Shown here piece by piece: positions 33,398-36,115 of a stretch of 64,000 nucleotides of DNA (its first letter is position 1; each line of letters starts with the position of its first letter). The notes under the pieces are model-generated. The model worked only from the letters and a program-made list of their open reading frames with translations, ran no database searches and was not told where the DNA came from. The DNA lies in NCBI RefSeq assembly GCF_033153115.1, contig NW_026889803.1, positions 7,626,001 to 7,690,000 on the forward strand. The letters run 5' to 3'. This stretch comes from Saccostrea echinata (lineage: Eukaryota). A program made the translations under genes and the position numbers.

Positions 33398-35563
33398 ATG
33401 CTGTCCCCCGGTATCGTACTGGGGTTCTTGGTGATTTTTGGCTCCTCGATAGGAACCTTTGGGGATTACTACGGTTCCTTTGACGATTATTATTACTATA
33501 ACGATGACGAACCTCGAGAGATTTCAAAGGAGCAAATCAAAGGTGAAAAATAACATACATTAGAAAATTCAGATATAACAGTTTTTTTACTCCGATCTTT
33601 TGCTTGACATTCAAAGATAGTTATTTCATTAGTTAAAATATTTTACTCCACTCATCTTTGTGGAGAATATTATATATTATATTTTTGGCTTCGTTTTCAT
33701 ATTTTTTAGCAATACAGTCCGTTATGAATGCAGTGCTTAATCAAAACATCGAAAGAGCTGATAACAGATCGTCGAAAGCGCTCGAGACTCAGTCGAGGCG
33801 GTGTGTCAACTCGGTGGAAATGTTTTCCAAATCTTGCGAAGCAGTAAATTGCGGAGGGTAAGTACACTACAAAATAAAGGAAATAAAAAGAATGGTAAAG
33901 ATATTAATGAGTCAAATATTCATTTATTAATAATAATAAAAAATATTAGTGATAAGTCTTGAGAAAAAAATATATTTAGCTTTGAACATTTTCACCATTG
34001 TACTCATTTCAGTGGGAATATATTCGATAAAATAAAAGGAGGGATATCGAAACTAACGAAAAAGGTTATTGGAAAGGCCAAAAAATTCTTGAAGAAGGGA
34101 CTGAAGGCGATCCTCGGGTTTAGAGTCCGCCGGGTGTTCAAAGGAATAAGGAAAGGCATCCGAAAACTGACGAGAAAAATTCGCAGAATAGTCCGACTTC
34201 CACGGGTTAGGGTGCGCCGGGCACTCAGAAGGATACGGAGGGGTGTCCGGAAAATCAGTAGGAAGATCCGCAGAATAGTTCGCCGTGTACGGGTGAGAGT
34301 GCGACTACCACGTGTAAGAATCCGAATCCGTAGGAGGTGGCGAAGTATGTTAACTGATGAAATAAATTTGAATCTCAGTATTTTAAAGAAAATGCTATAG
34401 ATCTCCGATATCTAGACCAAAAGATGATAACGTTTAATGAAAGAATAATTACTTGTTATTTCATCGTCATAATGTTTATTTTATTAATTTTCTTTGTGTT
34501 GGATGATGCCAATATTAATTCTTTTAGATAAAAATAATTGCCCATCATTGTACATTAAAATCAATATTGGATAATCCGAAAAACACCTTTCAAATCATTA
34601 TTTTGCAGGATGGGGAAAGAAAAAGAGATCGACATGCAGTGGGTGTAAACAGATGTCCAGCTTGAGTGAGGAACAACTCGTGGAAAGAAGTACTTTGATT
34701 TTATGTGATTTTATTAATATCAAAAATGCATTGCATTCACTGATAAGATCACCGATAAAGTTTGCCCAAAATTATTAAAAAGAAGTGAAACGGAGACAAA
34801 TTTTACATTAGAAAGTGACTGATTTTAGTTTACTCCAGATTGCAACGAAATACACAGAACTGTCACCTTTGAGTGTTGAAGAATTTTATCTAATTTTGAA
34901 CTGTAGGCCAAACATGGTATATTTAAGGTCTTTCGTCTTCTAACGAAGACCTTCTTGTTATTCTTAGGTTTCTTTTTCACTTTTAATATTACTATTATTT
35001 TTTTTTCTTACTGATTTTGTGCACGCGATTTCTCATTATCTATTATTTTTTTTTAAAACAATGTGAGATAAACTGAAATCATTTCCAAGTTCTTATACTT
35101 GTAGTGTGTCCCTATCTGAAGAAAGCTGAGCAGAGAGCGACCAGAACCATGACTTTCCTATCTAAATTGATATCGGAAATGGAAGAAGGATATCCCGCAA
35201 TTCAAAAAGTGGGTATTTGTTTTATAAACACATCTAAACTGGAAGTCATTGAAAATGTTTAATCTTATTACATTCTAAAAAGCTGTTTATATTAATAAAT
35301 CATATTACATGTAGTAAGTTTTTTTTTGTTATTTTTGTCTATACTGAAGAGACATCTTATTTAAAGAAACAATCTTATCGTTGGAGCCTTTTTACTTGCA
35401 GATTTTGCATTATGAAAACACATCAGATGAAGCAAAAGTAACGTTGGCCGTAAAGGAAGGGACAACAAATTATGTGGTACGGAATTTCAGCAGAAAAGGT
35501 AGTAGAGGAGCAGGGGTTATCCTAGGCCAGTACATTTTCAGGAGAGCAACGGCTGGTTCTTAA
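33398..35563 (+). CDS. Secreted 323-aa precursor with a hypercationic Lys/Arg amphipathic insert; putative remote clusterin homologue / antimicrobial-peptide precursor
   Basis: Exons 33398-33542, 33710-33857, 34013-34344, 34609-34689, 35105-35208, 35402-35563 (972 nt, GT-AG, intron phases 1,2,1,1,0, no stops). Signal peptide MLSPGIVLGFLVIFGSSIGTFG, acidic Tyr-rich DYYGSFDDYYYYNDDE, C-x10-C-x4-C, 112-aa K/R insert, W-G-KKKR, C-x2-C-x15-C. AATAAA at 35594. Confidence 0.88.
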
Positions 35564-35774
35564 AGGCAATGTGAAAAAATAGATCTCAAGTAAAATAAAA
35601 ATGAAATTGAATTTCATTCCATGTGTTTATTTGTTTTGGCGATATAAAAAAAACTGATAATTTATACATGTAAGTTAGAAAGTGGTGTTGGGGTGGGGTT
35701 AAAATATGCACCAAGAGACATAGTCTCTTTCTTGATATTAATAATGATAATGAATATGAATAGCTGCGATGTTG

Positions 35775-36115
35775 ATGGATTTATCAAAGGCTTTTGCTTG
35801 CCTTACTCATGATTTGTTGCTTTTAAAACTCAAAGCATATGGCTTGTCCAAACCAGTATTACATTTGCTAAATGGCTATTATCAAGTAAGAAACAATATC
35901 TAAAGATTGGTCCTCATTTAAGTGAAATACTGGATATTCTGAAAGATGCACCATGAGGGTTCTATTCTTGGACCTGTATTTTTCAATATTTTTATTTACG
36001 ACTTGTTCTTCTTTAATTGTATAAAACTGTATCCTCTATGATTATGCAGATGACAATACCCTAGCAAAATCTCATAAACTGCTACAAGGAGTTATAAAAT
36101 CCTTACAGGAGGACA
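35775..36115 (+). mobile_element. Degenerate CR1/L2-type LINE reverse-transcriptase fragment
   Basis: MDLSKAFxCLTHDLLLLKLKAYGLS ... GSILGPVFFNIFIYDLFFF ... LYDYADDNTL, with frameshifts. Confidence 0.8.

Follow-up and report, generated by a model that had tools for sequence, protein, structure and literature searches.

A Six-Exon Oyster Gene Predicted to Encode a Secreted Polycation Framed by Cysteine Clusters, and Its Unnamed Family in Pteriomorph Bivalves

The Gene and Its Predicted Product

The window analyzed here is a stretch of 64,000 nucleotides (nt) from the oyster Saccostrea echinata (RefSeq assembly GCF_033153115.1, contig NW_026889803.1, positions 7,626,001 to 7,690,000 of the forward strand), and it carries a gene whose predicted product is a secreted protein with a long, very basic arm set between two clusters of Cys residues. 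The gene model runs from 33398 to 35563 on the forward strand in six exons (Table 1). All of its introns are of the GT...AG type, the joined exons amount to 972 nt with the last codon as the sole stop, and the resulting protein has 323 amino acids (aa). All six exons are collinear with the full-length proteins of Magallana gigas, M. angulata, and Crassostrea virginica, and this collinearity extends to the residues at the junctions themselves (QIK-A-IQS, RRWR-R-WGKKKRS, ER-M-CPYL, and QK-ILHY). At the 5′ end, exon 1 aligns with the N-termini of the Crassostrea/Magallana proteins and of the Saccostrea cucullata protein XP_062592193.1 (P0001). At the 3′ end, exons 4–6 (347 nt together) are open in the needed frames, have canonical splice sites, share 35–54% identity with proteins of oysters from another genus, and retain the motifs WGKKKRS-x-C-x2-C, CP(F/Y)L, G(F/Y)P, SDEA-x-VT, NFS, and YIF. 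Homology thus supports the six-exon model as that of a real gene. Its exons have a guanine-plus-cytosine content of 0.39–0.54 in surroundings of about 0.25–0.30, and the gene is single copy, each exon tested matching only itself in the 923-megabase genome of its own species. Searches for homologues, Pfam families, and genomic copies were run exon by exon rather than with the joined protein; the joined translation was used to check the reading frame, assign coordinates, measure composition, and compare the protein pairwise with the relatives that were retrieved. The splice model had been proposed in a reading of the DNA made from its letters and open reading frames (ORFs), and this sequence-only reading needed only small corrections at exon boundaries. 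Its layout of signal peptide, acidic segment, helix, three Cys, arm, GKKKR, three further Cys, and C-terminal domain is present as described in the 323-aa product.

The arm spans aa 99–210 and contains 34 Arg, 17 Lys, and a single Asp in 112 residues, for a net charge of +50. The earlier count of 51 Lys/Arg and one Asp is therefore exact, as is the remark that the arm lies almost wholly in one exon, since exon 3 encodes aa 99–208. Its α-helical hydrophobic moment exceeds that of all 1000 composition-preserving shuffles (mean moment 0.69 versus 0.34 ± 0.06), which bears out the amphipathic character that had been ascribed to it. The 180-degree hydrophobic periodicity of the whole arm, as a strand would have, is not above that of composition-preserving shuffles, and a search of the arm exon for repeats at the DNA level found none. 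Relative to its Crassostrea relatives, the arm of the window protein is more Arg-rich, is more helical throughout, and has two RLP units only. In the C-terminal domain, the sequon N298-F-S is conserved in oysters and N276-T-S is additionally present.

Table 1. Exons, predicted protein features, and associated sites of the gene, numbered from the first letter of the window
Feature	Position	Strand	Description
Exon 1	33398–33542	+	aa 1–48 plus 1 base; start codon, signal-type core, acidic Tyr-rich stretch
Signal-type hydrophobic core	aa 5–15, in exon 1	+	likely cleavage near G19/T20 (33398–33454)
Acidic Tyr-rich stretch, D23–E38	33464–33511	+	exon 1; Asp- and Tyr-rich
Exon 2	33710–33857	+	aa 49–98; predicted helix plus N-side Cys cluster
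N-side Cys: C80, C91, C96	33802–04, 33835–37, 33850–52	+	spacing C-x10-C-x4-C; columns conserved in the family
Exon 3	34013–34344	+	aa 98–209, codons split at both ends; nearly the entire polycationic arm
Lys-rich amphipathic part of arm	aa 99–134		first part of arm
Arg-rich amphipathic helix of arm	about aa 135–185		second part of arm, followed by the (RV)n/RLP part
Intron 3	34345–34608	+	264 nt, GTATGT...TTGCAG; splits ...RRWR/RWGKKKR
Exon 4	34609–34689	+	aa 209–236, codons split at both ends; W210, processing motif, CxxC
Processing motif G211-K-K-K-R215	34614–34628	+	exon 4; putative, sequence motif
C218 and C221	34635–37 and 34644–46	+	exon 4; CxxC spacing
Exon 5	35105–35208	+	aa 236–270; C237 in conserved CP(F/Y)L, then helix closing with E-x-G-(F/Y)-P
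C237	35107–09	+	exon 5
Exon 6	35402–35563	+	aa 271–323 plus stop; 53-aa C-terminal domain ILHY..SDEA.VT...EG...Y...NFS......G.YIF
AATAAA polyadenylation-type hexamer	35594–35599	+	31 nt past the stop codon; pattern only

An Unnamed Family of Pteriomorph Bivalves

Searching exon 3 against 1.84 billion representative proteins returned one clear relative, the S. cucullata protein XP_062592193.1 (LOC134253642; expectation value (E) 1.7e-31, 83% identity), and across aa 1–210 the two proteins are 73% identical. A search from this protein in turn led to 339–388-aa proteins of M. gigas (LOC105329769, deposited as XP_011429481 and A0A8W8K9B5, and XP_065935769), M. angulata (LOC128188020), and C. virginica (LOC111134456); identity between the window protein and the Crassostrea proteins ranges from 20 to 44% by region. 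Profile searches reached beyond these oysters to Pinctada imbricata FSP39_005781 (382 aa, E 8.5e-14) and to Mytilus californianus LOC127738668 (272 aa from an N-terminally short model, E 1.5e-16), and they additionally yielded two proteins from a further oyster. The window locus is shown by these alignments to be an orthologue of an unnamed family conserved across pteriomorph bivalves, namely oysters, pearl oyster, and mussel. The sequence-only reading had presented the gene as encoding a candidate new protein, a claim that survives in part. The family is not new to the databases, where its members are already deposited as "uncharacterized protein", but it carries no name, and no paper on it turned up in a literature search that covered identifiers (gene, protein, and UniProt) and the short repeat motif. 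A 137-aa protein from ENA (P0048) has a signal peptide followed directly by about nine PRVRL-type repeats and a basic, Cys-containing tail; its match to the family profile is weak (E 0.31).

Family members differ in the number of (RVRLP)n units in the arm, even within a species. The C. virginica gene LOC111134456 has 341-aa and 387-aa versions (P0005/P0007) that differ in this respect, and so do the M. gigas proteins P0003 and P0008 (339 and 388 aa). The latter two have neighboring accession numbers and lie on the same chromosome, and they may be tandem paralogues.

Many Logan contigs of 1.1–1.5 kilobases, to which the window exons also align, bear a whole, uninterrupted ORF of 339–348 aa, one cluster of them having 57 members. 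Because the genomic ORFs P0036 (C. gigas-type) and P0009 give way on either side to unrelated sequence at the positions of introns 2 and 4 of the window gene, these full-ORF contigs are probably spliced complementary DNA, which would mean that the family is expressed in Magallana/Crassostrea. The position of intron 2 is shared with C. gigas, as judged from the 5′ end of the read-through ORF P0036. Intron 3 appears to be specific to the Saccostrea side, since the Crassostrea/Magallana-type genomic ORFs P0036, P0009, and P0037–P0040 continue straight through its position. We considered intron 3 as a mobile element, repeat, or introner and rejected the idea because the genome contains it only once. 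For S. cucullata, the RefSeq model (P0001) ends in ...GRWRRT, three codons beyond the equivalent of the end of exon 3; missing from it are the WG-basic motif, the three Cys of the C side, and the C-terminal domain. It is probably a truncated annotation that reads through the unspliced intron.

Conserved Features and the Evolution of the Arm

Every full-length homologue has an N-terminal hydrophobic core of the signal type (maximum Kyte-Doolittle value over 11 residues of 2.6–3.0), and three Cys before and three after the arm are kept in Pinctada and in all oyster proteins that extend over the two clusters. In full-length relatives the arm has 114–170 aa and a net charge of +43 to +57; for the mussel, whose model is partial, the charge is +31. 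A W-G-(K/R)3-6 sequence ends the arm in every oyster or Pinctada member that reaches this point (as WGKKKR, WGKKKKR, WGKRRKR, WRGKKRKR, or WGRRRRR), the mussel arm ends in WGKKR, and the wider motif WG(K/R)n-S-x-C-x2-C is conserved in all members reaching that point. The acidic Tyr-rich stretch is found in all oysters and is missing in Pinctada. Within the arm, the part before the first RLP/RVP unit has helical amphipathicity at z-scores of 3.8–7.8 over shuffles in eight of nine members; the exception, P0040, is split at an early RLP, and its helical periodicity (z 6.2) falls after the split. The distal (RVRLP)n module has a strand-type alternation instead, with z 2–5 in most members.

Order as well as composition is conserved. 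The arm alignment beats shuffles of the same composition in every pair (z 7–12). In comparisons with Pinctada the arm scores z 9–12, the N-side flank 4–6, and the C-side flank 0–6. In the collinear alignment of the window protein with full-length members the region scores lie between 6 and 40, the C-side region aligning at about 38–40.

These comparisons bear on several of the earlier proposals. Conservation of the hydrophobic core speaks for the predicted signal peptide, and the W-G-(K/R)3-6 sequence at the arm end in every member reaching it has the form expected of a convertase, carboxypeptidase, and amidation site. The suggestion that a disulfide would cross the arm if all Cys are paired is likewise consistent with the 3 + 3 Cys of all oysters and Pinctada; because each side has an odd number (three), at least one bridge would then have to span it. 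The processing-site and disulfide proposals thus gain real support from conservation, at the level of sequence, as does the amphipathic character of the arm, which its relatives share. Two further expectations fare poorly. The picture of conserved flanks around a hypervariable cationic exon is contradicted by the arm z-scores, given that the arm aligns in every pair and is better kept against Pinctada than the flanks. Release of several peptides does not hold as a conserved feature, as internal R-X-K/R-R sites range from zero to five per member.

Searches against Known Families and Folds

None of the six window exons or 12 family proteins comes near the cut-off of any Pfam family. This includes the known bivalve antimicrobial families (defensin, big defensin, mytilin/myticin, Cg-Prp, and myticalin), for which no Pfam match reaches cut-off, and it agrees with the earlier statement that the protein, encoded here by a single copy, is not recognizable as defensin, big defensin, Cg-Prp, or myticalin. 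A saposin-like or swaposin fold was suggested by the spacing of the Cys residues, and no such family appears at E up to 10. The Pinctada member (P0044) gives sub-threshold scores to Apolipoprotein (PF01442; 12.8 bits versus a cut-off of 90), Phasin_2 (13.8), and Senescence (14), which reflect the periodicity of amphipathic helices and not membership. Exchangeable apolipoproteins (PF01442) were rejected as a family for these proteins on that P0044 score, and the other members score nothing.

Structure prediction adds little to these results. The AlphaFold model of P0003 from M. gigas has a predicted local distance difference test (pLDDT) score of 44.7 and draws the C-terminal domain, at low confidence, as a hairpin followed by a helix; Foldseek with this model returned no matches. 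The model of P0044 is better, with a pLDDT of 60.5 overall and 70–86 over the Cys-cluster helices and the Lys-rich part, the latter being modeled as a three-helix bundle. The matches listed for it are generic helical bundles (Foldseek E 0.46 or worse; best Z of 9.0 in VIA-align, where a Z of roughly 13 is needed for helical folds). When two family profiles and P0044 were searched against PDB sequences, the matches were weak and at chance level (E 0.02 or worse), the proteins concerned being prion protein and the coiled coils of chemoreceptors; ESM Atlas gave no usable match. Positions 27–100 of the family profile, which cover the Tyr-rich and first-helix region, have many weak matches to the globular domains of mammalian prion proteins (E 0.025–0.8), and we take the prion protein matches to be chance resemblances of composition.

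Comparison with Known Systems

The named bivalve relatives are true homologues, collinear over their full length, with the same signal peptide, 3 + 3 Cys, Lys-rich helices, (RVRLP)n, WG-basic motif, and C-terminal domain; the window gene differs from its Crassostrea relatives in having an extra intron. Precursors of the cecropin, magainin, and tachyplesin types have a signal peptide, a cationic amphipathic segment, and a Gly-basic cleavage and amidation signal, and the window protein carries the same three sequence features. The differences from such linear amidated peptides are of scale and setting: the arm in this family has 112–170 aa rather than 15–40, it is flanked by Cys and would stay tethered to a disulfide scaffold, and the window gene is single copy and slowly evolving.

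The Pro/Arg-rich peptides (Bac5, Bac7, PR-39, oyster Cg-Prp, and mussel myticalins [PMC5577615, PMC12294457]) share with the arm its units of Arg, hydrophobic residue, and Pro, such as RLPRVRV, and some of them also share a molluscan or mucosal context. Peptides of this kind are short and Cys-free when mature and often form multigene, hypervariable families. In the family described here, by contrast, the repeat is one module of a Cys-bearing protein of 320–390 aa, and no Pfam or sequence match links the two. A different parallel is offered by precursors of the type of eosinophil major basic protein, in which an acidic stretch also lies N-terminal to a very basic segment. In the major basic protein precursor, the acidic pro-piece before the effector may mask its charge in transport. 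The eight Asp/Glu of the exon 1 stretch cannot neutralize a charge of +50, however, and the stretch is missing in Pinctada.

The closest parallel in outline is clusterin (apolipoprotein J, PF01093). Clusterin is secreted, its Cys clusters flank an internal convertase site, and the mature molecule consists of two antiparallel, disulfide-linked helical chains with a flexible tail at the cut. Each chain contributes five Cys, and five disulfides join them. The window protein has the same secreted outline with Cys clusters on either side of a basic site, here predicted from sequence. It differs in that no similarity of sequence was detected, nor any clusterin among the fold matches listed for models of low to moderate confidence, in having 3 + 3 rather than 5 + 5 Cys, and in having a polycationic where clusterin has a hydrophobic tail. 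The design is a variant of the known theme of cationic peptide precursors, but its scale and its predicted tethering are both unusual.

Proposed Processing and Function

Convertase motifs take the form (K/R)-Xn-(K/R), and Gly followed by basic residues is an amidation signal. With these rules applied to the conserved features, the reading that we favor, at a probability of roughly four in ten, is that the protein is a convertase-cleaved, amidated, disulfide-tethered two-chain polycation, most likely used in host defense. The protein would enter the endoplasmic reticulum by way of its signal peptide and be cleaved near G19/T20. The helix carrying C80, C91, and C96 would pair through disulfides with the segment carrying C218, C221, and C237, in the simplest case by three bridges, so that before further cleavage the arm would form a loop whose two ends are helices tethered to each other. 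Sulfation of the acidic Tyr cluster is possible in oysters. Next, a proprotein convertase would cut after GKKKR215, a carboxypeptidase would trim the basic residues, and G211 would be converted to the amide on W210, leaving a C-terminal Trp-amide. The expected product is two disulfide-linked chains, with chain A ending in a free amphipathic arm of roughly +50. Such an arm may bind polyanionic surfaces electrostatically and insert its hydrophobic face, and its likeliest use would be in host defense by coating, aggregating, or permeabilizing microbes. An antimicrobial role is plausible on these sequence features. Because internal R-X-K/R-R sites are not conserved, the release of many small peptides would be at most a lineage-specific extra.

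The S. echinata genome contains loci with proprotein-convertase P-domains (nine matches) and with type II copper monooxygenase domains, two families to which the processing enzymes belong. Several points nevertheless weigh against the favored reading. The copper monooxygenase domain (PF03712) is common to enzymes of the dopamine-β-hydroxylase type, and the loci are no proof of an amidating enzyme. Structure predictions are poor to moderate (pLDDT 44.7 and 60.5), and a predicted complex of the N-side and C-side parts of the P0003 scaffold scored 0.02, which speaks neither for nor against their contact. The S. cucullata model stops just inside intron 3, and an unspliced, truncated product is possible in that lineage. 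Finally, antimicrobial effectors of bivalves are usually multigene and fast evolving; a deeply conserved family, with its gene in single copy here and an arm whose conservation is of the purifying type, is unusual among them. A bolder version of the reading makes the family an ancient, pteriomorph-wide effector, a tethered "macro-antimicrobial peptide" with a three-disulfide two-chain scaffold and an amidated arm of 110–170 residues and about +50. It would have stayed single copy since the ancestor of oyster, pearl oyster, and mussel, would be unrelated to the described antimicrobial, clusterin, and apolipoprotein families, and could act by surface coating instead. We regard this version as tentative and, as a whole, rather unlikely.

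The same conservation lends itself to a non-immune explanation, in which the protein is a housekeeping binder of extracellular polyanions and its arm cross-links or condenses a conserved polyanion of the host. Candidate ligands are sulfated mucins or glycosaminoglycans, acidic shell-matrix proteins, an adhesive, or a gamete coat, and the scaffold and C-terminal domain would anchor or orient the arm. The single copy in the S. echinata genome is in keeping with this explanation. So are the range from oyster to mussel, the near-constant charge of the arm, and its conserved residue order, a pattern that suits a fixed host ligand more than it suits an arms race; all that varies is the number of (RVRLP)n units. 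What tells against it is that the Pfam searches linked the protein to none of the known families of shell-matrix proteins, mucin binders, or adhesives and that amphipathic helices with a Trp-Gly-basic end are classic for membrane-active peptides. We consider a polyanion binder the main rival, possible though doubtful.

If the arm were instead a polyprotein precursor from which convertases release several short cationic peptides, the scaffold would be merely a carrier. The window arm does contain five R-X-K/R-R sites, with cuts expected after aa 138, 167, 174, 205, and 209 and a Lys-rich helix of about 40 residues as the first product, and the RVRR after this helix is invariant in the six Crassostrea/Magallana/Saccostrea proteins of the first alignment. 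The number of sites is not conserved, however, with two in most Crassostrea proteins and none in P0008, P0039, and P0041. In place of RVRR, P0008 has RVRK and P0039 has RIRK, and no such motif occurs at the aligned position in Pinctada or Mytilus. The terminal WG-basic site is the sole universal one, and a polyprotein is accordingly improbable in our estimate.

The parallel with clusterin raises the question of whether the family might be related, very remotely, to clusterin or the apolipoproteins and act as a secreted chaperone or lipid binder, its two-chain, disulfide-linked helical scaffold bearing the cationic arm in place of the hydrophobic tails of clusterin. The order of signal peptide, long helix, Cys cluster, flexible segment, basic site, Cys cluster, and helices is analogous, and the conserved GKKKR between C96 and C218 has the form of a motif for an internal convertase site. 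The sub-threshold Apolipoprotein, Phasin_2, and Senescence scores of the Pinctada protein and the three-helix bundle modeled for its Lys-rich part point the same way. Against this, PF01093 has no match at E up to 10 in the window exons or the 12 family proteins, and it is absent from a six-frame search of the S. echinata genome, though control genomes were equally silent. Nor was clusterin listed in the PDB searches with profiles and single sequences, or among the Foldseek and VIA-align matches listed for models with pLDDT 44.7 and 60.5. The Cys number is 3 + 3 and not 5 + 5, and an argument from intron position is weakened because intron 3 appears to be lineage-specific. On present evidence clusterin is an analogy of architecture only, without membership, and a common origin is quite improbable.

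It is very improbable that the model is spurious, or that the gene stops short after exon 3, with the 264-nt interval as an insertion that ends the ORF and exons 4–6 as relics: the S. cucullata protein P0001 does end in this way, yet exons 4–6 remain open with canonical splice sites, kept motifs, and clear identity to proteins of another oyster genus, their C-side region aligns far above shuffles, and splicing restores the conserved RRWGKKKR exactly.

The Neighborhood of the Gene

Elsewhere in the window, broken ORF pieces lie directly 3′ to the gene at 35769–36041 on the forward strand. Their resemblance to reverse transcriptase (RVT_1, E 0.11) falls well short of the cut-off, and they are probably a decayed retroelement fragment. 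On the reverse strand, an ORF of 516 aa at 62116–63666 contains a seven-transmembrane receptor domain of the secretin family (7tm_2, E 9.3e-11). The forward-strand ORFs at 45295–45903 and 54757–55581 have no Pfam match.

Outlook

If the arm is the effector, the family would represent an undescribed and unusually large kind of cationic defense molecule in commercially important bivalves. Deep conservation in single copy would then be unusual in itself, as invertebrate effectors are usually fast-evolving and multigene. Orthologues are at hand in Magallana gigas and Crassostrea virginica, for which expression atlases, infection models, and peptidomics exist. If the protein is a binder of host polyanions instead, it would be a conserved and wholly uncharacterized component of bivalve extracellular biology. 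In both cases, the RefSeq model of S. cucullata appears to be cut short, and the family merits a name and a profile of its own.

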